Source: Guillardia theta CCMP2712 (Eukaryota > Protista > Cryptophyta). Taken from it: a DNA stretch of 64,000 nucleotides. The number at the start of each line of letters is the position of its first letter. The stretch's first letter is position 1. Made by a program: the position numbers and the translations under genes. The stretch covers positions 28,490-92,489 of the forward strand of contig NW_005434555.1 of the NCBI RefSeq assembly GCF_000315625.1, in the 5' to 3' direction. Below, in pieces: positions 5,686 through 57,543 of the stretch. Below the pieces are notes generated by a model that was not told the origin of the DNA, did not search any database, and saw only the letters and a list, made by a program, of their open reading frames with translations.

Positions 5686-8600
5686 ATGTCGAGATCGTTT
5701 CTTCTCTGCATTGTGCTGCTTCTGGCTGGTCCAGCTGATTCGCAAGGTCAACTAGGTGAGTCTAGTCGCATGCCTTGTGCTCGTTTCAAACTCTCTGACC
5801 GGCTCCTCCAGCCTCTGCCCTCAGCGGCACTTTCCGCTATGGTCATTTGTTCTGGGACGCGATATCAGGAAATCGCGTGCAGTTCACCGTGGAGGCTGCT
5901 TTCACTCGCGTTGTGGATACAGGGTACTTCCGAGGGACGGAAAGGGACGGGTACGCGCAGATCGGAGACATGGTGGTGATGGTAGGACGAGAGACGCCCA
6001 TGTTTGATTTCGGGGACGGCTTCATATTGGACAGGCTGACGATGAAGATCATCGCATACTCGATCGAGAGCAACTGGATTTTAGGTCAGGCAGTGTTCGA
6101 GCATGTTTACGCTACTCCCAACAACGGCGGGTCACCTTGGGTCGTGAAGTTCTCAGGATGCTGTCGGATCTCGAACCTGCTGCAAGGAGGGAACCAGCCG
6201 TGGCTGCTGCTTGGCGAGGTTGACCTGCTCCGGAGCGTCAGCTCTCCGCGATCTTTCGTTCCTCCCATGATCGGAGGGAAGTACTGTCAGAATGCTCAAT
6301 ACGGAGACTACGTCACCGTCTTCATCCCTGCGGCCATGAGAGACCCGCAGGGTCGGTCTGTGTCTGCTCCCTACCTGAAAGTGGACGAGCCTACCCAGAC
6401 AAACACGCTGACACAGTTCGGCGATCAGACGGGCAACGGCATCGCCATGCTTCCGCTGAGCTACCACATCGCTACATCTGCAGAGCAGTGCGTCATTGGA
6501 CAAAATGTTGACTACTTGTTAGGGTTGCGAGGAGAACTGATAGTATGAGACAGAACGGGCTGCGTTGCTTGGGGTACTTGATACAGTCGCATGTCAACGT
6601 CCCTGCGTCCACGGTAATCTCACTCCCCTCATACGCTCTTGTCCTGTCTGTGTGCCACCAACATGGTGGGAGGAAGCGCTGACGAGCGGGTGTGGGGTCA
6701 GATTGAAGGCGTGGTCAGAATCGACTCGGCAGAAGGAGGAGTCGTGCTCTCCACGGGATCAAGCTCCGCGACTTGTCAAGCAAGCAAGAGCTGCGAGATA
6801 TCAATGATGTACTGAATGTGCTCGTTATGCTCCGAGAGGTGACGATGTTGTGATGTCAGCTACGTGAAAGTGAACGAGACACACGTGACGGTCGGACACG
6901 AGCTGCAAATCGACAGTAACAACAATTTTAGCTTGTCCGTTGTTGCATTTGCCATGGCGGTAATGCTTCGATGCTCTCGCGCTTCTTCGTGCTCGGCCGT
7001 AGAGCGGTAGTTGCTCACTTGGCTTGCAGGAGAAGCTGGCAGTGGGTCGCTGCATGCACTTGGCGGTAGTTCGCCATTCGTTCTCTCAGAGCTCGAAGTA
7101 CTACTCGACCTACAAAGTCTACGTCAACGGGTGTGATGATCCCTGCCCTTCCTCGATACTAGTTGCTGACGTGGCGCGCGAACCTCCGTGCAGGCAAGTG
7201 CTGAGCAAGGGAGAGTATCCTCCGTGCCAAGCAGGAGGAGGGTGCACGGGAGGGCGACGCCCGGGGATTGCGCTCAAAGCCTTGTCGGAAGGAGAATCGA
7301 ACCCGGTGAAGCTTGTCAAGCAGGAGTGACGCGGTGGACTCATGTTGACTGCAGGTCGAGGGTCCTCGCACGTCATACTCGACTGACTCCATGGGGTCGG
7401 GAGCCTACCTTCTGTTCGGAGGATATCGAGGAGCGGCGGGTCCCCCGTCCTACTTTCACGGGTGAGCCTGGACGCTGAGGAGTGAGGGAAGAATGTGAGC
7501 GATGCTGTGCAGATCGCTACGAGAATGGCGGTTCTGGCTGGGAGAAAGGAACGAAGGAGAGATAGTGCGGTGGTACCAGAGGCAGATTGAGCCGTCCTTG
7601 TCCAACAGCTATGGAGACCCAACTTCCCTGTACGGGCAGAGCATGACAAGTGCGACCGACTACCAGATAGCTTCCCAGCTGCTGCTTCTGTACAGCTTTG
7701 ACTGGAGTAAGGCATCGGCGGCAGACAGCTCATGTCCAGCCTACAGGACGACCTGCCGATACTCGCAAGTGAGGCCGACGTACCCGATGGGGGTAGACCA
7801 GTCGAACTACATCCTTAAGACTGACGTAGCGAACCCGAGAGTCTCGCATGCGAGCCAGAAGTGTGTACAGGCGCCCTCAGACTCCTCGGTCAGCCCTTAC
7901 GCTCTGTCGCTGCAGCTTCTTCCGGGCTACAACCAGTTGACCGTCTACTTGTCATGGGATGCCAACCTGACCGGAGTGCCTGTCGACATCGTCTCGCAAA
8001 CGATCGAAGCTGTGAGCTGCAGCGGCGTCAGTCAGTTCAAGGTCGGGAGCTTGACCATCAACGAGCCGAGCTTGGAGTTCTCCGGCTTCTTCTCAAGCTC
8101 AGGCTCTGCCGATGCCTCCACTAGCCTCCCACCGATGATGGCCAAGTTGTCGACGTTGAGTGTGACCGCGGGAACGTACCTGGAGCTGACCGTGACGAGC
8201 ACGGTGACCTCGTCGAGCGACTTGTCGTCGCTGCAGGTAGGCGAGAGGTGGAGCCGGGGAGGGTGCTGACATGCGTGTTGAAAAGCTGCTGCTGGACAGC
8301 GGCAGGTCGCCGAGCACGATGTTCTTCCACGCCGCGAGGTCGACGACGTCGACGACAAGTCAGAGTGTGTCGATGAAGGTGACGTGGACCCCCTGCCAGC
8401 AGGACCTGGGGATCAACTTCATCTGCTTCCAGTCGCATGCTCGCTTCCTCAACGGCTCGCTCTGCTCCAACCAGCTCGACCGATCATGCAAGTCGAACGC
8501 TGACTGCTCGTCTAACGGTCTGTGCATCGCCAACTACGCGACGGTCGCCATGTCTCCTCTCAAGTGCCTAGGCATCAACGTCATCGTGGAAGATGCTCCC

Positions 8601-9266
8601 AAGTTCAACAGCTCGATCCCAGCATCAGTCGAGCTGATCATGGGCAGGGAGACTGCAGTTGACCTCGGCGTGTCTGTGGCGGATTGTCAGTCGCAGGTAT
8701 CGCTGGAGGTGGCGTCGGGGAGCATGCTTCCTCCGGGCGCCTCCCTATCCTCCCTGCTGGTTGCGAGCTGGGGCTGTACGGGGCGGTACAAGACGCTGAG
8801 ATGGACCCCCTCGCCCAAGGTGGGCGGGTACAGCTCGCTGAGCTGCTTTGTGGCGAAGAAGCTGCTGAGCAGCTCGACCTGTGCTGGGCTCGTACCCTCG
8901 TCGTCAGAGCGGTGCATCCTTGTGACGGTGCTGCCTTGTGTGTACTCGGTGGGGCGGGACCAGCAGCTGCAGGAGATCGCGGCGCTCTTCAACATGGACT
9001 GGATCCTCTTGTGGAGCCTCAACGCCAAGGTGTTTCACCCGGACTATCTGGTCTACAGCCAGCAGAACATCAGCGTCGGGCACGTGTACAGGTCGGAGCT
9101 GGCGGACGTGGGGCTGGACGTGGTGGCGGCGAGGTTCGGGATGACGCTGAGCCAAGTGGTGGAGATGAACTTCAACCTAGCGGGTGCCGCGTTCCTGCCC
9201 AAGGGACAGCGAATGTGCGTGGTGCCCAACTCGTGTAAGGGGATGAAGCAGACGATTTATTCTTAA
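5686..9266 (+). CDS. Secreted protein B: signal peptide, HFRYGH/CCR N-domain, LamG-like domain, Ig-like (WTP) repeats, two C-terminal LysM-like domains
   Basis: Leader MSRSFLLCIVLLLAGPADS. Exon ORFs 5847-6548, 7024-7329, 7502-8269, 8271-9266. LamG-like motifs MHLAVVR..YKVYVNG..LREWRFW. C-terminus CVYSVGRDQQLQEIAALFNMDWILLWSLN and LDVVAARFGMTLSQVVEMN..LPKGQRMCV. Confidence 0.75.
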
Positions 9267-32248: not shown

Positions 32249-35200
32249 TTAAGAATAAATCGTCTGCTTCATCCCCTTACACGAGTTGGGCACCACGCAC
32301 ATTCGCTGTCCCTTGGGCAGGAACGCGGCACCCGCTAGGTTGAAGTTCATCTCCACCACTTGGCTCAGCGTCATCCCGAACCTCGCCGCCACCACGTCCA
32401 GCCCTACGTCCGCCAGCTCCGACCTGTACACGTGCCCGACGCTGATGTTCTGCTGGCTGTAGACCAGATAGTCCGGGTGAAACACCTTGGCGTTGAGGCT
32501 CCACAAGAGGATCCAGTCCATGTTGAAGAGCGCCGCGATCTCCTGCAGCTGCTGGTCCCGCCCCACCGAGTACACACAAGGCAGCACCGTCACAAGGATG
32601 CACCGCTCTGACGACGAGGGTACGAGCCCAGCACAGTTCGAGCTGCTCAGCAGCTTCTTCGCCACAAAGCAGCTCAGCGAGCTGTACCCGCCCACCTTGG
32701 GCGAGGGGGTCCATCTCAGCGTCTTGTACCGCCCCGTACAGCCCCAGCTCGCAACCAGCAGGGAGGATAGGGAGGCGCCCGGAGGAAGCATGCTCCCCGA
32801 CGCCACCTCCAGCGATACCTGCGACTGACAATCCGCCACAGACACGCCGAGGTCAACTGCAGTCTCCCTGCCCATGATCAGCTCGACTGATGCTGGGATC
32901 GAGCTGTTGAACTTGGGAGCATCTTCTACGATGACGTTGATGCCTAGGCACTTGAGAGGAGACATGGCGACCGTCGCGTAGTTGGCGATGCACAGACCGT
33001 TAGACGAGCAGTCAGCGTTCGACTTGCATGATCGGTCGAGCTGGTTGGAGCAGAGCGAGCCGTTGAGGAAGCGAGCATGCGACTGGAAGCAGATGAAGTT
33101 CATCCCCAGGTCCTGCTGGCAGGGGGTCCACGTCACCTTCATCGACACACTCTGACTTGTCGTCGACGTCGTCGACCTCGCAGCGTGGAAGAACATCGTG
33201 CTCGGCGACCTGCCGCTGTCCAGCAGCAGCTTTGCAACACGCATGTCAGCACCCTCCCCTGCTCCACCTCTCGCCTACCTGCAGCGACGACAAGTCGCTC
33301 GACGAGGTCACCGTGCTCGTCAGGGTCAGCTCCAGGTACGTTCCCGCGGTCACACTCAACGTCGACAACTTGGCCATCATCGGTGGGAGGCTAGTGGAGG
33401 CATCGGCAGAGCCTGAGCTTGAGAAGAAGCCGGAGAACTCCAAGCTCGGCTCGTTGATGGTCAAGCTCCCGACCTTGAACTGACTGACGCCGCTGCAGCT
33501 CACAGCTTCGATCGTTTGCGAGACGATGTCGACAGGCACTCCGGTCAGGTTGGCATCCCATGACAAGTAGACAGTCAACTGGTTGTAGCCCGGAAGAAGC
33601 TGCAGCGACAGAGCGTAAGGGCTGACCGACGAGTCTGAGGGCGCCTGTACACACTTCTGGCTCGCATGCGAGACTCTCGGGTTCGCTACGTCAGTCTGAA
33701 GGATGTAGTTCGACTGGTCTACCCCCATCGGGTACGTCGGCCTCACTTGCGAGTATCGGCAGGTCGTCCTGTAGGCTGGACATGAGCTTTCTGCCGCCGA
33801 TGCCTTACCCCAGTCAAAGCTGTACAGAAGCAGCAGCTGGGAAGCTATCTGGTAGTCGGTCGCACTTGTCATGCTCTGCCCGTACAGGGAAGTTGGGTCT
33901 CCATAGCTGTTGGACAAGGACGGCTCAATCTGCCTCTGGTACCACCGCACTATCTCTCCTTCGTTCCTTTCTCCCAGCCAGAACCGCCATTCTCGTAGCG
34001 ATCTGCACAGCATCGCTCACTTTCTTCCCTCACCCCTCAGCGTCCAGGCTCACCCGTGAAAGTAGGACGGGGGACCCGCCGCTCCTCGATATCCTCCGAA
34101 CAGAAGGTAGGCTCCCGACCCCATGGAGTCAGTCGAGTATGACGTGCGAGGACCCTCGACCTGCAGTCAACATGAGTCCACCGCGTCACTCCTGCTTGAC
34201 AAGCTTCACCGGGTTCGATTCTCCTTCCGACAAGGCTTTGAGCGCAATCCCTGGGCGTCGCCCTCCCGTGCACCCTCCTCCTGCTTGGCACGGAGGATAC
34301 TCCCCCTTGCTCAGCACTTGCCTGTACGGAGGTTCGCGCGCCACGTCAGCAACTAGTATCGAGGAAGGGCAGGGATCATCGCACCCGTTGACGTAGACTT
34401 TGTAGGTAGAGTAGTACTTCGAGCTCTGAGAGAACGAATGGCGAACTACTGCCAAGTGCATGCAGCGACCCACTGCCAGCTTCTCCTGCAAGCCAAGTGA
34501 GCAACTACCGCTCTACGGCCGAGCACGAAGAAGCGCGAGAGCATCGAAGCATTACCGCCATGGCAAATGCAACAACGGACAGAGCAAAGTTGTTGTCACT
34601 GTCGATTTGCAGCTCGTGTCCGACCGTCACGTGTGTCTCGTTCACTTTCACGTAGCTGACATCACAACGTCGTCACCTCTCGGAGCATAACGAGCACATT
34701 CAGTACATCATTGATATCTCGCAGCTCTTGCTTGCTTGACAAGTCGCGGAGCTTGATCCCGTGGAGAGCACGACTCCTCCTTCTGCCGAGTCGATTCTGA
34801 CCACGCCTTCAATCTGACCCCACACCCGCTCGTCAGCGCTTCCTCCCACCATGTTGGTGGCACACAGACAGGACAAGAGCGTATGAGGGGAGTGAGATTA
34901 CCGTGGACGCAGGGACGTTGACATGCGACTGTATCAAGTACCCAAAGCATCGCAGCCCGTTCTGTCTCATACTATCAGTTCTCCTCGCAACCCTTACAAG
35001 TACTCAACATTTTGTCCAATGACGCACTGCTCTGCAGATGTAGCGATGTGGTAGCTCAGCGGAAGCATGGCGATGCCGTTGCCCGTCTGATCGCCGAACT
35101 GTGTCAGCGTGTTTGTCTGGGTAGGCTCGTCCACTTTCAGGTAGGGAGCAGACACAGACCGACCCTGCGGGTCTCTCATGGCCGCAGGGATGAAGACCGT

Positions 35201-38673: not shown

Positions 38674-39974
38674 ATGAAGTACGCCTTGGTCGCGCTGTTT
38701 GTTGCACAGCTTCTCTGTGCAGAGGCTTCTGTCTTGACCGCAACTTCGACTCTCCCTGTGAGAACACTCTTGAATGCCGAGAAGCTGAACACGAGGAACT
38801 GACTGCAGCTCAGGTGTCGAGCGCCTTCACTACTTTGGAACCTTCGAGTACCTCAAGACTTGCACTTCGTGGTGGAAGTGCTGAAGGTGAAAGCCTCGTG
38901 ATCCGATGAGTTAGCATCTTCACGATCTTACTATCTCTAAAAACAGATGATGAGATCGCAAAGGAGGCTGCCGCCCTCGGCAAGGTGATGCGAGTTTGCT
39001 ACGAGTTTAGGAGCTGACCCTTCCCCTCAGGTCGCCGTCACTTTCGAGGTTTCAGTTCACCACCTGAGGCCCGCCAACGGCCCACCAGTGAAGGTTGACG
39101 ACCAGTGGCATCGGAGGCGAAGCTTGTGATCCGTTGGTTCTTTCAGGTAATGGTGGTTGGCAACACCCCCGACCTTGGCCAGTGGGACGTCAGCAAGGTA
39201 TGAAGATGAGATGGCCTGTGCTCTTGGAGGAGGAGGAGGAGGAGGAGGAGGACAAGGAGGGCGAGGTCGAAGGCGAGGAGGAGATGGCCTGTGCTCTTGG
39301 AGGAGACATGTGCTGACTTGTTCCGTCCTCTTGCAGGGAATCTCCTTGATCACGACACCTGAGAACTTTCCTATCTTCACTGGAGTTGCCTTCACCGACC
39401 CCAACACCGAGGTGGGAGCTCGTCGTCCTGTGCTTGTTCGTGTTTGTTGTCCGTTCCCTGCTCTCCCCGTGCAGATCGGCATCGGAGGGATCGGACCCTG
39501 CCCCTTTGCCATTCCTTCTTCACCTTCGCTCTTCTTTAGAGCACCTCCTGCTTTCCCGTCTGACGTCAACATGGCAGTTGGAGTACAAGTACGTCATCGT
39601 CAAGGCACAGCCTGGAGGCCAGGGACCTGATAGCCAGTGGGAGGTGCAGTAGCGGGCTGGAAGCTCATCTCTAGTGACTTGATGAGCAGGCAAACAACAG
39701 ACAACTCAAGGTTGGTACCAACGGTGTCATGCACGTGAAGAACGCCTACATCGAGAACCGCCTGTCCGATCCGAGAATCACCGACGAGCCCTTCCAGGTA
39801 CAGAGGGAGGGAGGAGGGAGGGGATGAGAGGAGTGGAAGAGGTGTACAGGGGAAGGTGGTTGTGGAGGACGAGGGGGGGGAGATACGGTGCACGAGTGCA
39901 GCTCGTGACTGTCCTTGCAGCTCACCGCGCAAGAATGGTCGAGGTGGTTCAGGCATCACCTTAGCGTACACTAG
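38674..39974 (+). CDS. CBM20 starch-binding domain protein with signal peptide + LRGG leader (probably periplastidial)
   Basis: MKYALVALFVAQLLCAEA...RLALRGG. CBM20 pattern VAVTFEV...CDPLG..W...LITTPENFPIFTG...LEYKYVIV...SQWE.NNRQL. Confidence 0.8.
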
Positions 39975-40139
39975 GCTGAGAGTTGATCGCGCTCTGCCTG
40001 AGCTGTCTATCTGATCTTGACTGTGACAACATTGTTCCTGTGATTCCGAGACATCTGAGCTCGTGTGAAACTCCTAGATCTGAACGCGTTCACTTCCTCT
40101 TAGCCTCTTCTTCCGCTCCTATTCTCTCCTGACGTCAAA

Positions 40140-40292: not shown

Positions 40293-40629
40293 AGCCTCTT
40301 CGCTCCCAACTTCTCTTTGCACTTTCCCCGACAAACCACTCCTCCCACCCCCGTGTGGTCAAATCACCACCGGTCATTTCCAGACAAATACCAAGAGGAT
40401 GGTAGGGGTGGTCACCCTCCCCCATTAGGGCAATGCGTCTCTAACCAAAGCAAGCAGCCAGATCCCTTCTCCATCTGCCCTCGTTCCTCCCTCCCTCCCT
40501 CCCTCCCCTCCCTCCTTCCTTCCTCCCCCTCCCCTGCCTCCCTCCCTCCCTCTCCTCTGTCCCTCCTCCCTTCCCTCCCTTCCTCTCATCCACCTCGTTT
40601 CTTTCGGGGCATTGGGCATCCACGCTGAG

Positions 40630-43600
40630 ATGAAGTGTCATGATGTGATACTTGTTCTCTGCTTCTTGGCTCAACCTCTGCACGGCGAGGAGAAGCAACA
40701 AGAGGAGAGATATCCCTCCGACTCTGTGCAAAGATTCGTAGAAGAATACTTCAAGACTTCGTCGAGACACACTCTCTGTCTCCTCTGGGGCCCCTTGCCG
40801 AGGTGGTTTGCTCCCTCTTCTCAACTCTGTCACTCCGTCCCTTCCTCTCCTCTCCTCTCAGCTCCCGTCTGCCTCCCTCGCTCTTGTCCTCTCCAACCCT
40901 CTTCTCTTCCTTGCTGACCTCTCCTTCCTGCGGCAGGAGTCGTCTCCTGCCGACGTTGCGCAGGGGCTGCGAGGCGATCATGGAAGTTGCCGATGCATGG
41001 GAAGTGGACTTGAGATGCCGGCGCAGCCATGGCCTTGTGCTCAACACGTCGAGCCTGGAAGAGCCGGGGATCGTCTGCGGAGGAGGAGACGAAGTCAGCG
41101 ATCTCCTCCTCGACTCCTCCTGGGGTCTGCCAGATGCTGTCATTTACTCTCTTCCCTTCTCCCCTTCGCTCGAGCCCTTCAGCAATGAGCAGGCGGCACA
41201 GGTTCTGTCCCATCCCCACGACGACCCCCTGACGCACCCGGCAGCTCCGACAAGTCCTGAGGCCCGGGGGTACCCTCCTCTTCGCCTCCCCGACAGTCTT
41301 CCGATCCGCTCCCTCCTTTCTTGACGTCAGCATGCTCCCTGAGAGAAAGTTCTCTGTAGCCTCCCGCCTCTCCCCGAGGAAACTGCCAGTCTCTCGTGCA
41401 GCCTACGCTAGTGACACTTGCTGCCAGGCTGGTGAAACAGAGCCTGGAGGCAGCTGGACTGTGCGTGAAGGATGTGAGCGCACGAGGATCGCCGACATTC
41501 ATGGTATCCTGCTCCTGCTCCCGCTCCCGCTCTTGCTCCATGCTGCTCCCGCTCCCGCTCCATCCTGCTCCTGCTCCTTCTCCTTCTCCTTCTGCTCTTC
41601 CTCGCTTCGACATCATCACCCTCCTCTCTGCAGGTCGGTGTCATGCACGGAATGGGGTTCAGCGACTTCTCCAGCGAGACGATCGTCGGAGGAGGTGAAG
41701 GGGAGGAGGAGGAGATGAAGGGGAGCAGGAGGAGGTGAAGGGGAGGAGGAGGAGGTGAAGGGGAGCATGGAGGCCGAGTATCGAAGGAGAGGCAGATGAA
41801 AGGAGGGGCAGGGGGGGAGGACAGTCTTACAGAGGCTCTCAGGAGCTAGGGAGGAAACTTTTCGATGGTAGACTGGAGAGAAGCGGAGGAGGAACGAGGA
41901 AGCAATGCGGAAAAAGAAAGAAGGGATGGGGAGGAGAAGGGGATTTGAGGAGAAAGGGGAGAGGGAGGAGGAGAGTGATGAGATGGAAAGAAGAGCGCAA
42001 AAAGTCAGAGGAAGTGATGGAGAGGAAGGATATTGCTGTTGGAGGCTCATGAAGGATGACAGGAGACGTGGATGAGAATTTTCCCCACACCCTGACGGCC
42101 ATGGCGGTGAGAGGAGAGAAATGCGAAGAGAGTGCGAGGGAGGACAGAGGAGATGGGAAGCGGAGAGAGGACGAGGAGGGAATCAAGGTGCTGGTGATGA
42201 CGCAAGCGACACACACGTACTACAGGTGCGACGGATGAAGATGAGGAAGAGGAGGGAAGGGGAGGGGAGGCAAGGGAGGATGGGTGGGAGGCGGGGAGAC
42301 GGGGGAGGAGGAGATCAGAGGAAGGAGGAAGGAGCAGATGCAAGAACGAGTAAGAAAGGAGGATGGTGGAGAGGAAACTGTCAAGGGAGAAGAATGACGT
42401 GATGCTTCCAGGTATGTCGCTGGACTTGCAAAATCCCTGGATGAGTATCTAGCGGGGCAGGGCTGGGAGATCATGTCCTCGTCCTCGTCCTCCTCGTCCT
42501 CGTCCTCCTCCTCGTCCTCGTCCTCCTCCTCGTCCTCGTCCTCCTCGTCCTCCTTCTCCTCCTCCTCCTCCTCCTCCTCCTTCTCCTCCTCCTCGTCCTC
42601 TTCCCCTTCCTCGTCCCCGTCCTCTCAGATTCACGTTCGCCTCATCGTCTTCACCGACAACTCGGTCTGTCCTCGTCTCCTCCCGTCGGCTCCTCACCCT
42701 CCCACAAGAATTTCGACCATCACCGGGAGACTTGTCGTGATCTCAAGAGGTATCCCAGCTGGAGCCCTGCAACTCCCAGCTGAACTTCAGTACAGAGTGC
42801 GGGTAGAGCACAAACACGTCCCTCACTGGGGCTGGCCAGGTTGCTCTTGATAGCGTCTTCCTCCTCCCTCTGATTGGACCTGTAGAGCTTGCGCTGAGAC
42901 GGTGGCAGACGTACTTGCAGGCAGACCTCCTCCTCCTTCTTTTCTTCCTCCTCCTCCTTCTTTTCTTCCTCCTCCTCCTTCTTTTCTTCCTCCTCCTCCT
43001 TCTTTCCTCCTCCTCCTTCTTTTTTTCCTCCTCCTCCTCCTCCTCCTCCTCCTCCTCCTCCTCCTCCTCCTCCTCCTCCTCCTCCTCCTCCTCCTCCTCC
43101 TCCTCCTCCTTCTTTTCTTCCTCCTCCTTGTCTTTGTCTCTTGTCTCTTGTCTCTTTTCTCTTCCTCGTCCTCGTCCTCGTCCTCTTCCTCGACCTCCTC
43201 TACTTCGTCCTCGTCCTCGTCCTTTTCGTTCTCCTTCTGATTCTGTATCCTTTAGTTCTCCTCTCTTTCCCCCCCCCCTCTTTTCCTTCTACCATTTGAC
43301 TTTCCAGCAGGCGGAGGAAGCAATCCGAGACGTCGACTTCGTTTTTCACATTGGTAACACAGAAGATGAGAAGAGAGGCAGGAGGGGGAGGTGGAACGAG
43401 ATGAAGATCTTGAGGAGCGAGGAGGAGCAAAGGATAGGGAGGTAACGAGGAGAGAGAGAGGAGAGCAAGAGGACAAGGAAGAGAGAAAAAGAAGGAGAGG
43501 AGAAAGGGGAAGAGGGTAGCCTTGGAAGATTCACAGTAGGAGCAGCACAGCATTAGGATGTGATTGACTCCGCAGACTGCGATGCTCGATTGGTCAGGAA

Positions 43601-45221
43601 CATCGCTCCTCTCATCTTGTGGGGCAAGGTGTAGGCTCTGAACTGCTGCTCGTGCTCCTGCCCCTGCTCCTGCTCGTGCTCTTGCTCGTGCTCTTGCTCG
43701 TGCTCCTGCTCCTGCGCATCTTCTCATTCTCATTAACATCTCAGTGTTTCTCCGCTCTCTTTCTCTCGCGCCCTCTCCTCCCCATCAAACTTTCATCTCA
43801 CCGCTGCACAGTCCTTTGGAGTCGTGCATGCGGACAATGCCTACTACTCGGGGGAGGAGGTGGTCTCGCTGGAGGAGGGGGAGGGCAGGTGAGGGATAGG
43901 ATTACCAGTTGCCTCACACGCTGAGAGAGGAGCAGAGAGACGCGGGACCTTCCTTTCTTCCTCAACGAGCTGAGGTCGCAACCACGAGGATATTTCGATC
44001 AGGAAAGAGCCTTCCTCTCTTGCTCTCCTGCTCTCCTGCTCTCCTGCTCTCCTGCTCTCCTGCTCTCCTGCTTTCCTCCTCCCTTGCATACACCTCACTC
44101 TCCCATTCTTCCTTGTGTCTTCCTGTCTCCTCCTCCTGCCCTCCTCTCCCACTGTCCTCCTGCATCTCATTTTCTCTCCTGACTCTACGACAGGCTTGCT
44201 TCCCTCGCTTTTGCCGAAGAGATCCTCCGTATCACGTGGCGGACAAGCAGGTCAGGGAGGGAGGGAGGGAGGGAGGGGAGGGAGGGGAGGGAGGGGAGGG
44301 AGGGGAGGGGAGGGGAGGGAAGGGAGGGAGGAGAGAGAGGGAGGGAGGGGGGAAGGGAGGGAGGGCGAAGGTGTTGGAACCTGACGATCATGAGCAGAGA
44401 TGCAGTATGCTTTCCCATGAAGGACTTTACTACTTCTACTCTGGTATCCTCCTGCTTCCTGTCTCCTCCTCCTCCTCCTCCTCTCCCCCCTCCCTCCTCT
44501 TTTCTTGTCATCGTCTCCCTTCCCGCGCTTGCTTTTGTCCCTCAGATCTGCTCGAGCTGCCCTTCATACCTGCCTGCTTACCTGCCTGCTTTCCTGTGTC
44601 CTCTCCTCCCCTCCATCCCTGAACCACCACAACCACCTCCTCCTCCTGCCTCCTCCTGCCTCCTCCTGCCTCCTCCTGCCTCCTCCTCCTCCGATGGCTG
44701 TTCTGAATTCTCCTCATGCTTTCTCAAGGCTTTTTCGGGGGCCCAGCAAACTGGATGCTCAACGCACTTCACACTCTTGTTGCCTTCACTGCAGAGGTGA
44801 TCCTTTTCTCTCTTCCCTCTTTTGCCTCCTTCTTGCTGGTCCTCGCTGGTCCTTGCTGATCCTTGCTGGTCCTCGCTGGTCCTTGCTGGTCCTTGCTGGT
44901 CCTTGCTGGTCCTTGCTGGTCCTTGCTGGTCCTTGCTGGTCCTTGCTGGTCCTTGCTGGTCCTTGCTGGTCCTTGCTGGTCCTTGCTGGTCCTTGCTGGT
45001 CCTTGCTGGTCCTTGCTCCTCCTCCCTCTCCTTCCCTTTTCTCCCTCAGGGTTTCAGCTCGTCTTGCTTCTGCTCCATCTCCTCACATGATCCTCCCCTC
45101 CCCCGTTTCTCACTGATTGGAGCTGGCAGGATGTGACGAGAGGGTTTGTTGGAGCTCGAGTTGATGATGAAAGTTATCTCAACCGCTTCTTCTGGGAACA
45201 GCCGCCCGACCGCATTCTCAC
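40630..45221 (+). CDS. Signal peptide + methyltransferase-like domain + GT6 (ABO/alpha-1,3-Gal(NAc) transferase family) glycosyltransferase; 3' end probably lost in the gap
   Basis: MTase-like motifs LRQVLRPGGTLLFASP, SLEAAGL, DENFPHTLTAMAVR. GT6 motifs IKVLVMTQATHTYYRY, LIVFTD, WP.LALRRW, DFVFHIDCD, GVVHA..YY, EGLYYFYSGFFGG, DDESYLNRFFWEQPPDRIL. The GT6 exons join in frame. Confidence 0.82.
44830..45016. repeat. (CCTTGCTGGT)n decamer repeat in a GT6 intron
   Basis: Roughly 18 tandem units. Confidence 0.92.
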
Positions 45222-45475
45222 GTAACTCTCCTCCTGTCCTCTCCTCTCTCCTCTCCTCTCCTCTCTCCTCTCTCCTCTCTCCTCTCTCCTCTCTCCTCTC
45301 TCCTCTCTCCTCCCTCCTCCCTCCTCCCTCCTCCCTCCTCCCCTCCCCTTTCCCCTTTCTTTCTCCCTTCCCTCTNNNNNNNNNNNNNNNNNNNNNNNNN
45401 NNNNNNNNNNNNNNNNNNNNNNNNNNNNNNNNNNNNNNNNNNNNNNNNNNNNNNNNNNNNNNNNNNNNNNNNNNN

Positions 45476-46664
45476 GGGGCGTTGGGTGGGGGGGAAGGGA
45501 GGGAGTTCCCACCTCCTGGATCGTTTCAGAGGGGTCGCCCTTGGCAGCGACGACACAGATGGGAACCTTCAGATTCTTGGCAAAGTCCTTCTCCTGTTCC
45601 CGAAGCACATCAGATCCTCCTCCTCCCCCCTCACTTTCTCCTGCTTCTCCTGTCTCTTCTACTCCTCTTCCTGTGCCTCCTGATCCCCCTGCCTCTCTTT
45701 CTCTCCCTCCTCTCGCCTTCTCCTTCTTCTTCTTCACCTTTTCCTTCTCCTCAGCGCCTCCCTCCCCCCCCCTCCCTCCCTTCCTCCTCCTCCACGTCTC
45801 AAGGTCCTCTTCATCCTCCTTCTAACCTTGTCCCAGAAGGCCGCATGCACGGCGATGGTGCTGCGAAGTCCCTCGGTGGCCTCACCACCGAAGCGCATGC
45901 AGATGTATCCTCCCCAGCAGAAGCTGCCGCGAGCATGAGTACAGCAGCTGCTATAGGAGGGGAAGGCGTACCCCATGGTGCTGTGGGAGGTGACGCCCTT
46001 GCCCGCAAGGTACTTCTTGCACACCTGCAGCTGGAGAGGGAGGTCAGAACAGAGCTTGGAGGTGAACATGACTGAGGGGGAGACGAGCCATGCAAGAGGC
46101 ACGTGTGGCGTTCGAGTCGACGGTGGTGAAGCAAGAAAAGGGCCTACATGTGTGTACCTGGCTCAGACACTCTGTGTAGAAGAAGCTGCCATCGGAACCA
46201 GCGATCCAAGCTGAGAGGTTGTCCTCAGGCTTGGGAGGGAACTTGTCGATAGGCCATGGCTTGTTGTTGTTGTTGACGAAGATGTCGGGGACGACAACGA
46301 GGAAGCCGTAGGCAGCAAGACGATCACAAACTTGCTTCACCTGAGGGCACTGGTCCTGAAAGCCGAAAATGTCGTAGATGACAATGACGGCATGGGATCC
46401 TTACAACGAAATATAAGAACCTAACCATCATACACGCAAATTCATCATAGACTCTGTTTGCTCTGACTGGTTCCACATCAAACTTTACCCTTAGACACCC
46501 GCCTCTGAACGAACAAACAACAAGGCGGGGAGGAGTGAGAGTGTTAGAGATCAACCTGATCCAGTGACGTACATGTTGTTTCCCTCGAACGTTTCCATCT
46601 TGCCAACAGGGTTGTACTCTGCCTGCAGCGGCTTACCCGCCTCCAAACAGCATGCCGACGCCAT
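45476..46664 (-). CDS. Dienelactone hydrolase family protein (3' end in the gap)
   Basis: MASACC, VIVIYDIFG, CDRLAAYGFLVVVPDIF, nucleophile motif G.CWGG, VPICVVAAKGD. Confidence 0.88.
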
Positions 46665-54316: not shown

Positions 54317-55159
54317 ATGAGCATCGACGAGCCCGACACGGCGCACTCGAGGGAGGACGTCGCGAGGCATCGCGAGCTCTCGAGCGAGCAGAGTCAGGGG
54401 GTGCAATCGAGGTCAGAGAAGAGGGGATACGACGATGGCGGCTTGCGTGGAGGGGGCGGGAAGAGGCTGGGGAGCGTCGGGGCCGCGGCGAGCTCAGACA
54501 TGCTTGAGAGCGTGTTTATGCCATGGCGCGCTGCGGGGGCGCAGAGCTTCGAGGATAGGGAGATGGAGGAGGCATACGGGCAGTTTTTCATTGACTCCAT
54601 GTACCGCGGGATGGTGCCTTTCATGCAGTTTATCCTTGCAGTCGCTAGTTGTTTCCAGGTAATCTACTTCATGTCAAGAGCATGGAAGCGGCGGCCGCTG
54701 CAGGCGGAGGACTTGTTCATGCTTGTGAGGATGGGGATGATTGGGGTGGGGTGGGTATCAACGATGCGGTGGAGCCGATGGACAGGGGAGGTGAAGAGGA
54801 GGGCATCGAGGCTGATGGTGTGGATGGTGAGACTCAGAATCTTTGCACTGATGGCTGAGCACCTAATCTCGGACGTCCCCTTGGAGAAATCCTTCCTCGC
54901 AGTGTTCACTGTCTCATTGTCGTCGACAGTCTTGTCGTGGAGCTGGAGGCATCACGTTCTCAACACGGTGGTCCTAACGCTGTCACGTCATCTGTCAGTT
55001 TTTTTTCAACCGGAGCTGCTTCAGAAGCGAGGGTACGAGCCCGCCTACTTCTGCGTGTTCTTCCTCATCTTCAATGCCGCCTCGCTGCTGTCGCTGTCGC
55101 TGCACGAGCGCCACAGGAGCTCCTTCCGGAAGATCTGGGACCCAGCCAAGAAGGACTGA
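54317..55159 (+). CDS. Intronless 280-aa multi-pass (about 5-6 TM) membrane protein, copy 1
   Basis: Single ORF with several hydrophobic helices. The paralog at 56701-57543 keeps the same frame and length. Confidence 0.75.
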   Translation: MSIDEPDTAHSREDVARHRELSSEQSQGVQSRSEKRGYDDGGLRGGGGKRLGSVGAAASSDMLESVFMPWRAAGAQSFEDREMEEAYGQFFIDSMYRGMVPFMQFILAVASCFQVIYFMSRAWKRRPLQAEDLFMLVRMGMIGVGWVSTMRWSRWTGEVKRRASRLMVWMVRLRIFALMAEHLISDVPLEKSFLAVFTVSLSSTVLSWSWRHHVLNTVVLTLSRHLSVFFQPELLQKRGYEPAYFCVFFLIFNAASLLSLSLHERHRSSFRKIWDPAKKD

Positions 55160-56700: not shown

Positions 56701-57543
56701 ATGAGCATCGACGAGCCCGACACGGCGCACTCGAGGGAGGACGTCGCGAGGCATCGCGAGCTCTCAAGCGAGCAGAGTCAGGGGGTGCAACCGAGGTCAG
56801 AGAAGAGGGGATACGACGATGGCGGCTTGCGTGGAGGGGGCGGGAAGAGGCTGGGGAGCGTCGGGGCTGCGGCGAGCTCAGACATGCTTGAGAGCGTGTT
56901 TATGCCATGGCGCGCTGCGGGGGCGCAGAGCTTCGAGGATAGGGAGATGGAGGAGGCATACGGGCAGTTTTTCATTGACTCCATGTACCGCGGGATGGTG
57001 CCTTTCATGCAGTTTATCCTTGCAGTCGCTAGTTGTTTCCATGGGATGTACTTCATGTCAAGGGCATGGAAGCGGCGGCCGCTGCAGGCGGAGGACTTGT
57101 TCATGCTTGTGAGGATGGGGATGATCGGGGTGGGGTGGGTTACAACGATGCGGTGGAGCCGATGGACAGGGGAGGTGAAGAGGAGGGCATCGAGGCTGAT
57201 GGTGTGGATGGTGAGACTCAGAATCTTTACAGTGCTAGTTGAGAATTTTCTCTTTGACGTCTCCTTGGAGAAATCCTTCCTGTCTGTATTTGTCAATTCT
57301 TTGGCGTCGACAGTCGTGTCGTGGAGCTGGAGGCATCACGTTCTCAACACGGTAGTCCTAACGCTGTCACGTCACTTTGCAACTTTCATCCGGCCAAGTC
57401 TGCTTGAGAAGCGAGGATACGAGACCGCCTACTTCTGCGTCTTCTTCCTCATCTTCAATGCCGCCTCGCTGTTGTCGCTGTCGCTGCACGAGCGCCACAG
57501 GAACTCCTTCCGGAAGATCTGGGACCCAGCCAAGCAGGACTGA
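56701..57543 (+). CDS. Intronless 280-aa multi-pass membrane protein, copy 2
   Basis: Direct duplicate at an offset of 2384 bp. The duplicated block is ~54167-55379 vs 56551-57763. Confidence 0.75.
   Translation: MSIDEPDTAHSREDVARHRELSSEQSQGVQPRSEKRGYDDGGLRGGGGKRLGSVGAAASSDMLESVFMPWRAAGAQSFEDREMEEAYGQFFIDSMYRGMVPFMQFILAVASCFHGMYFMSRAWKRRPLQAEDLFMLVRMGMIGVGWVTTMRWSRWTGEVKRRASRLMVWMVRLRIFTVLVENFLFDVSLEKSFLSVFVNSLASTVVSWSWRHHVLNTVVLTLSRHFATFIRPSLLEKRGYETAYFCVFFLIFNAASLLSLSLHERHRNSFRKIWDPAKQD

Follow-up and report, generated by a model that had tools for sequence, protein, structure and literature searches.

The window analysed here (the whole stretch of DNA under study, 64,000 nucleotides) was taken from contig NW_005434555.1 of the Guillardia theta CCMP2712 assembly GCF_000315625.1 (positions 28,490 to 92,489, forward strand), and all positions below are counted from its first nucleotide unless another contig is named. 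Over 40.6–45.4 kb, short coding-looking blocks are separated by microsatellite arrays (CTCCTG, CCT, CTGCTC, CTCTCCTG, AGGG, CTTGCTGGTC and CTCTCCT), and a 10 bp tandem repeat lies at 44875–45017. Eighteen exons drawn from these blocks join into a single open frame of 582 codons, which begins at ATG 40630 and runs across 17 introns. The locus (40630–45221, plus strand) is likely to be one expressed nuclear gene of G. theta CCMP2712 with at least 18 exons, its 3' end being lost in an assembly gap, and its product has the hallmarks of glycosyltransferase family 6 (GT6), the family of the ABO blood-group transferases. A spliced, open and expressed gene with GT6 homology is a solid but modest find.

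Splicing was assessed using Logan contigs aligned on 40400–44874. They came from X1, X2 and X3, three RNA-like runs of separate studies, and from one DNA-like run, X21. Joints lacking the intron were found in the RNA-like runs at 42664|42709, 42749|42796, 42839|42886, 43353|43576, 43628|43812, 43888|43936, 44002|44194, 44250|44398 and 44443|44729, the majority of them in X1, X2 and X3 alike. X21 read through the introns unspliced (e.g. 42037–42466 and 43271–43849) and contained none of the spliced joints in the aligned stretch. Unspliced stretches of two introns were also present in the RNA-like runs (e.g. 43324–43604) and are pre-mRNA, intron retention or DNA carry-over. Two apparent joints, 41710 to 43163 and 43187–43201 to 43691–43695, were discarded as repeat artefacts (short sides of 21–22 nucleotides, no GT..AG).

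A first-pass annotation of the window had named twelve exon blocks beginning at 42063 and proposed that their junctions be confirmed from RNA. All twelve blocks are present and in frame, with AG acceptors and with GT donors except for GC at 42921, and the named exons were found joined in contigs of X1, X2 and X3. The list was nevertheless incomplete: the exon at 43936–44002 had been missed, and the frame breaks after the block at 43812 if it is left out. With this exon included, the GT6 part is open for 345 codons. The block at 43812, given without an end, is real and now closes at 43888. The gene does not start at 42063 as had been supposed; RNA contigs join that position to five upstream exons, the whole 5' half of the gene.

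Exon 1 (40630–40802) contains the first in-frame ATG in the transcribed region, the RNA contigs starting about 60 nucleotides upstream, and by eye encodes a signal-peptide-like N-terminus (a short hydrophobic stretch followed by a charged run). Exon 2 (40937–41201, 88 residues) belongs to an N-terminal domain of no assigned type and is covered over 40935–41198 by X1 record 2 and X2 record 9. Exon 3 (41245–41378) carries a motif resembling the post-II region of class I methyltransferases; the intron behind it, 49 nucleotides long, has a GA donor. Its joint to exon 4 (41428–41503) was observed at 41376 to 41426 in X1 and X3, and an AG acceptor was obtained there only with a GA..AG placement. A piece of exon 4 is present in X3 record 20, and exon 5 (41634–41694) has an in-frame junction to the first GT6 exon at 42063.

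The junction 41694|42063 ties the two halves of the gene together. X3 record 20 was aligned in the pieces 41242–41376, 41426–41501 and 41633–41708, and the last of these has four mismatches, the number predicted if 41694 continues into 42063. The 183 nucleotides of X1 record 4 that lie upstream of 42061 equal exon 5, exon 4 and 48 nucleotides of exon 3. By the same kind of arithmetic X2 record 9 (1026 nucleotides) extends from about 60 nucleotides before the ATG to 42504. It could still be argued that there are two genes here, an N-terminal-domain gene (40630–41694 plus a nearby stop) and a GT6 gene starting from ATG 42102, and that the joining contigs are read-through products or chimeras: if the donor at 41694 is left unused the upstream frame is terminated near 41735, the ATG at 42102 is in frame, and contigs do not resolve single molecules. 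Against such a division stand the joint itself, found in X1 record 4 and X3 record 20 and by arithmetic in X2 record 9, the GT..AG borders and preserved frame of the intron, and the consequence that initiation at 42102 would leave the GT6 protein devoid of a signal or anchor sequence. We regard two separate genes as highly improbable.

The GT6 part begins with exon 6 (42063–42225; X1 record 4 and X3 record 21), which encodes an acidic linker and the first strand and helix of the domain, with the A-T-x-x-Y motif, and aligns to positions 12–44 of the GT6 profile described below. Exon 7 (42412–42664) encodes a helix, a run of about 50 serines and a strand ending in F-T-D. The serines are coded by a (GTCCTC)n microsatellite and fall in the GT6-domain loop that connects the first helix to the F-T-D strand; contigs enter the tandem repeat (42475–42624) from both sides and its middle has no direct coverage. 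Exon 8 (42709–42749) is bounded by the joints 42664|42709 (X2) and 42749|42796 (X1, X2 and X3). Exon 9 (42796–42839), with joints in X1, X2 and X3, encodes the conserved pair W402-P403. Exon 10 (42886–42920) encodes R409, the counterpart of the donor-binding Arg73 of the Bacteroides ovatus enzyme BoGT6a, and is followed by a 390-nucleotide intron with a GC donor. Exon 11 (43311–43353) supplies the strand leading into the DxD motif as well as the first nucleotide of the codon for D430; it is joined at 43353|43576 in X1 and X2 to exon 12 (43576–43628), which holds the remainder of the predicted metal-binding motif D430-C431-D432 (C431 and D432 at 43578–43583).

Exon 13 (43812–43888; joints 43628|43812 and 43888|43936 in X1, X2 and X3) encodes H453 and the start of an insertion of about 40 residues common to an algal subgroup of GT6 proteins, and exon 14 (43936–44002) encodes a further part of it. 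Pieces of exon 14 were aligned at 43932–43999 in X2 record 11 and X3 record 23, and the joint 43999 to 44191 was found in three runs; the 191-nucleotide intron that follows has a GA donor, and again an AG acceptor was obtained only with a GA..AG placement. Exon 15 (44194–44250) is present in X2 record 11. Exon 16 (44398–44443) starts the Y-F-Y-S-G-F-F-G-G donor loop and is joined at 44443|44729 in X1, X2 and X3 to exon 17 (44729–44796), which encodes G533-G534. X2 record 11 and X3 record 23 depart from the genome at 44797, and the departure of X2 record 11 backs the donor 44796 of the last joint with RNA. Exon 18 (45130–45221) encodes V563-D564-D565-E566-S567, with the codon of the putative catalytic Glu at 45169–45171, and ends at a GT donor. 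This exon is supported by its frame, by collinearity with the GT6 profile up to position 212, by tblastn matches to six GT6 proteins and by a profile hit in the G. theta genome itself. Its acceptor at 45130, which lies outside the RNA-aligned stretch, is inferred from frame and homology.

The intron 42921–43310 is of the GC-AG type, and the joint 42920|43311 was established by length arithmetic: the 124 nucleotides of X1 record 5 equal 2+44+35+43, exact to the base. Two further introns, 41379–41427 and 44003–44193, allow only a GA..AG placement, the exon|intron border reading AG|GAAA in both. Contigs of two or three RNA-like runs contain each of them in spliced form, and the reading frame requires both. 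GA-AG introns, if common, would be relevant to gene prediction in the G. theta genome.

An assembly gap of 100 N (45377–45476) hides the last exon or exons, corresponding to about 40 profile positions that include the C-terminal donor-binding tail. Because exon 18 ends at a GT donor, the gene continues beyond 45221, and X2 record 11 extends about 154 nucleotides past exon 18, so the missing 3' part is present in RNA. The GT6 profile match of the spliced product ends where the assembly ends. A C-terminal GT6 exon was found neither after the gap (tblastn with GT6 proteins) nor elsewhere in the genome (profile search). In characterized GT6 enzymes, C-terminal basic residues close over the uridine diphosphate (UDP)-sugar (Lys231 in BoGT6a; Lys359 and Arg365 in alpha-1,3-galactosyltransferase, alpha3GT).

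For family assignment, the spliced window protein was compared by script with sequences fetched from databases. A profile was built from 74 single-domain representatives, none of them from the window protein's own subgroup and all of them (74/74) positive for PF03414. The spliced product scored 108.8 bits against this profile over positions 12–212, and the best of 1000 shuffled sequences scored 2.9 bits. In phmmer searches it matched the paralogue on contig 4 of the same genome at 83.7 bits and the proteins P0002–P0004 at 68–73 bits; these targets pass PF03414 at 95–107 bits, the Pfam gathering score being 25 bits. The window protein thus has collinear, significant homology to PF03414-passing proteins, and judged by its sequence it belongs to the GT6 family and contains an ABO-blood-group-type transferase domain. 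An exhaustive profile search returned 2855 GT6-like cluster representatives. No orthologue of the window gene was present among the best 150 of these 2855 matches, the top one being the paralogue at 82.5 bits.

Microsatellite introns are poor in stop codons and long open frames are common in this DNA, which is what would be expected to favour a chance frame in repeat-rich sequence; bacterial or phage contamination was considered together with it. Both are refuted by the RNA splicing and the profile score: the score is far above that of the shuffled sequences and the spliceosomal introns are backed by RNA. In addition, the same genome has three paralogues, situated on other large scaffolds, and the flanking genes are eukaryotic.

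A genome-wide PF03414 scan did not pick up the small exons of the window gene. Public protein models and orthologues were sought with exon-containing stop-free frames of the window, and none was found at 132–420 residues (exons 15–16) or at 124–395 residues (exon 2), both searches being limited by length and shared words; a search with the paralogue's domain (275–875 residues) returned no window protein under the same limit. The window gene is therefore probably absent from public protein sets, the blanks being limited by length and not proof of a missing annotation. To that extent the earlier description of the gene as hidden was probably fair, three database searches having yielded no public model, although the length limit of these searches applies to it as well. 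The case illustrates that gene models of a reference alga such as G. theta can miss genes whose exons of 35–90 bases lie amid microsatellite introns, and that exon-by-exon reading can recover them.

The genome (87.1 Mb, 669 contigs) was searched for relatives, and four GT6-like loci were found, on contig 4, contig 12 and contig 1 and in the window. Two of the three other loci pass the PF03414 cut-off directly. The contig-12 locus is of the canonical W-H-D-E-S type. The contig-1 locus (about 1254500–1259050, minus strand) consists of many small exons, an intron interrupting the H-D-E-S / N-R-Y motif, and has a C-terminal C-x-R-D-E-x-H-P-W-L-W motif common to the contig-4 protein and P0004. The contig-4 gene (396946–400206) is intronless, its open frame exceeding 1070 codons, and corresponds to GUITHDRAFT_100270 (EKX54020.1), 914 of 919 30-residue words being identical; the deposited model (948 residues) begins 131 residues into the open frame. 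About 500 residues C-terminal to its GT6 domain gave no Pfam hit. By sequence, its GT6 domain matches BoGT6a (E 7e-25) and ABO transferases (E ~1e-20). A structure predicted for this paralogue from a five-row alignment was of modest quality, with a mean predicted local distance difference test score (pLDDT) of 58 and a predicted template modelling score (pTM) of 0.62, and all 50 of its 50 best fold matches in the PDB were GT6 structures.

Maximum-likelihood analysis of 76 domains grouped the window protein with the contig-4 paralogue and six proteins of environmental or transcriptome origin, in a clade supported at 98 by the Shimodaira–Hasegawa-like approximate likelihood-ratio test (SH-aLRT). 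Its end branch is 4.59 long versus a median of 0.97, and so long a branch suggests a placement less sure than the support value. Two relatives in the clade are single long open reading frames on contigs that also carry fragmented eukaryotic-looking genes (PAP_fibrillin, protein kinase). The window gene would be a fast-evolving paralogue in an algal GT6 subgroup whose members have the insertion of about 40 residues and carry Val at the position of the acceptor-stacking Trp. Three GT6 proteins each are given in a published CAZy table for G. theta and for Goniomonas avonlea, a cryptomonad without a plastid (PMC6260743); from these counts GT6 is known in cryptomonads and is probably old there. Algal GT6 is thus not new, and the window gene is a fourth, divergent copy of a family published as three in G. 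theta.

Residues were compared at columns with at least 80% agreement among the 74 GT6 proteins. The window protein retains F-T-D, W402-P403, R409, D424, D430, D432, H453, Y526, F531 and G533-G534, as well as D553, D565-E566-S567, N570, P578 and L582. The DxD motif is D430-C431-D432, the aligned columns being 99% and 96% Asp, and H453 is the counterpart of the acceptor-binding His (His122 in BoGT6a, His233 in human GTA). E566, in D565-E566-S567, aligns to a column that is invariant in 74/74 sequences. The equivalent catalytic Glu is Glu303 in GTA, Glu317 in alpha3GT and Glu192 in BoGT6a. In BoGT6a this Glu, which all known GT6 conserve, is catalytic, and the substitution E192Q lowers kcat by a factor of 2x10^4; Asp191, His190 and Arg73 bond to O4', O6' and O3' of the donor sugar, respectively, while Trp189 stacks on the acceptor and His122 binds it (PMC3516806).

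Two changes are shared by the whole algal subgroup, S529 (Gly in the family) and V563 (Trp in the family). Val563 occupies the place of the acceptor-stacking Trp (Trp189 in BoGT6a, Trp300 in GTA), which the window protein therefore lacks; since Val is found in all six other subgroup members, the exchange reads as a trait of the subgroup and not as a defect of the window gene. Five replacements, E442L, E509H, S514Q, A516C and H564D, are confined to the window copy and affect columns whose conservation across GT6 is at least 84%. Among them D564 replaces a His present in 88% of the family and in every other subgroup member, the donor ligands R409 and D565 being kept, and the conserved Glu, Ser and Ala of the Y-E-R-R-x-x-S-x-A loop are also replaced in this copy only. 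At the positions that we take to correspond to 266 and 268 of GTA, which distinguish A from B specificity, our own alignment has Tyr and Gly. On this comparison the catalytic core and metal site appear intact, with one donor ligand and the acceptor platform changed.

Such a pattern might be left by an expressed GT6 that is degenerating or has been repurposed, whether as a pseudo-enzyme, as a binder of carbohydrate or as a transferase with a quite different donor, the classical reaction being lost. The long end branch, the replacements found in the window copy only (the donor O6-binding His and the Glu, Ser and Ala of the Y-E-R-R-x-x-S-x-A loop included) and the failure of the database searches, within the best 150 of 2855 profile matches, to provide an orthologue for a test of constraint all speak for it. 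Decay is harder to reconcile with 582 codons that stay open across 17 introns, with the retention of the catalytic Glu, both DxD aspartates, the Gly-Gly loop, Arg409 and His453, and with spliced transcripts in three data sets. We consider this explanation, the main rival, unlikely but credible.

The N-terminal half of the protein is less easily placed. Residues 1–19 are signal-peptide-like by eye. Residues from about 40 to 236 show a strand-helix pattern and an R-V-L-R-P-G-G motif resembling the R-V-L-K-P-G-G of class I methyltransferases, but the Gly-rich motif I of these enzymes is absent, its position reading W-G-P-L-P by eye. Exons 1–3, tested one at a time, gave no Pfam hit at E<=1; the N-terminal exon pieces had no relatives in the PDB and no methyltransferase among their PDB hits; and exon 2 found only itself in its own genome and no relative in 5.8 billion proteins. 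A language-model search gave a faint methyltransferase lead (score 0.82, rank 29). Assignment of residues ~40–236 as a class I S-adenosylmethionine-dependent methyltransferase was rejected on the profile results and the missing motif I, the tests being of single exons so that a distant kinship is possible. The domain of about 200 residues is left without a family assignment, and methyltransferase is a weak lead. A bolder scheme would have a secreted two-domain enzyme, in which a methyltransferase-like module and a remodelled GT6 together build a novel modified alpha-linked glycan for the cryptophyte cell surface. It is prompted by an N-terminal module without relatives, by the exchange of His for Asp at the O6 ligand and by Tyr at the A/B-specificity position, and we find it doubtful.

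We favour a simpler reading, to which we assign a probability of roughly 0.7, namely that this is an expressed gene for a GT6 glycosyltransferase of the secretory pathway with a remodelled choice of donor and acceptor. The product would consist of the signal-peptide-like N-terminus, the unassigned domain and a GT6-family catalytic domain of the GT-A type. It would enter the secretory pathway, bind a UDP-hexose in a metal-dependent manner through D430 and D432 and transfer the hexose with retention from the UDP-sugar to a glycan acceptor, in the manner of other GT6 enzymes that bear DxD, E566 acting as the key catalytic residue. Val for Trp in the subgroup and Asp for the O6-bonding His in the window copy together imply that donor and acceptor probably differ from those of the A/B-antigen reaction.

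Several points weigh against this reading. The end branch and the copy-specific replacements have been described above. Taken singly, the exons (22–84 residues) gave no Pfam GT6 hit, being too short on their own, and a PDB search with the last exon returned no GT6 but only chance hits to phycobilisome linkers. The signal-peptide-like residues were recognized by eye, and the assembly lacks the C-terminal tail expected to cover the donor. To our knowledge enzyme assays have been reported neither for the algal subgroup nor for any cryptophyte GT6.

The principal proposals of the first-pass annotation fared unequally. Its GT6 identification was borne out by the profile score (108.8 bits, no more than 2.9 bits being reached in 1000 shuffles), its view of a resident, intron-rich eukaryotic gene by the 17 introns, the open 582-codon frame and the spliced RNA contigs, and its statement that DxD and the catalytic Glu are kept by D430/D432 and E566. 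The phylogeny it called for puts the window protein in the algal clade (SH-aLRT 98, 76 domains). Its remark that knowledge of GT6 comes mainly from vertebrates, some bacteria and phages overstated the novelty, given the three G. theta proteins listed in PMC6260743 and the three other loci in the genome. The product it suggested, glycans with alpha-1,3-linked galactose or N-acetylgalactosamine, is not established, the acceptor Trp being Val throughout the subgroup and the O6-binding His being Asp in the window copy.

Upstream of the gene, a multi-exon gene at 38800–39975 (plus strand) has exons that by eye resemble a starch-binding CBM20 module. The downstream neighbour (45477–46400, minus strand) is convergent and dienelactone-hydrolase-like by eye, its 3' end adjoining the gap. 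Elsewhere in the window, pairs of open reading frames of equal length (255 and 331 residues) lie at 7502–9266 (plus strand) and 32249–34013 (minus strand), about 23 kb apart, and suggest a large inverted duplication. Two 280-residue open reading frames at 54317–55159 and 56701–57543 (plus strand), 2.4 kb apart and the source of near-identical spurious tblastn alignments, suggest a tandem duplication.

Among the closest known systems is the paralogue GUITHDRAFT_100270, which shares with the window protein the Y-F-Y-S-G-F-F-G-G loop, A-R-V-x-D-E-S, D-N-A-x-Y-S-G-E-E and the insertion before Y-E-R-R. It differs in being intronless over more than 1000 codons, in passing PF03414 at 95 bits, in its long C-terminal extension and in having no N-terminal domain of the window type; the window copy for its part has 17 introns, an N-terminal domain of its own, the Ser run and the five unique replacements. 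For the role of ABO-type transferases outside vertebrates and bacteria, these two copies form a natural test pair.

BoGT6a (PDB 4AYJ, 4AYL and 4CJ8) belongs to the same family and is both the paralogue's best solved-structure match and its best fold match. Its Glu192, Asp191, Arg73 and His122 correspond to E566, D565, R409 and H453, and its Trp189 and His190 to Val563 and Asp564 of the window protein; it has neither the insertion nor the N-terminal domain. BoGT6a carries N-x-N and needs no metal (PMC3516806), whereas the window protein has D-C-D. DxD is likewise kept in the GT6 proteins of Parachlamydia acanthamoebae, cyanophage P-SSM2 and many marine metagenomes, and the P. acanthamoebae enzyme requires a divalent metal (PMC3516806). 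The consensus of the 74-protein profile is of the D-A-D-M type found in these bacterial, phage and marine proteins; they are single-domain proteins of 220–320 residues without the algal insertion, and the window protein lies outside them in the algal clade. Human GTA and GTB and bovine alpha-1,3-galactosyltransferase resemble it in DxD, in a catalytic Glu within D-E-S and in being secretory-pathway proteins. The vertebrate enzymes differ in being type II membrane proteins, in having W-H-D-E-S and in the short loop that leads from the acceptor His to Y-E-R-R.

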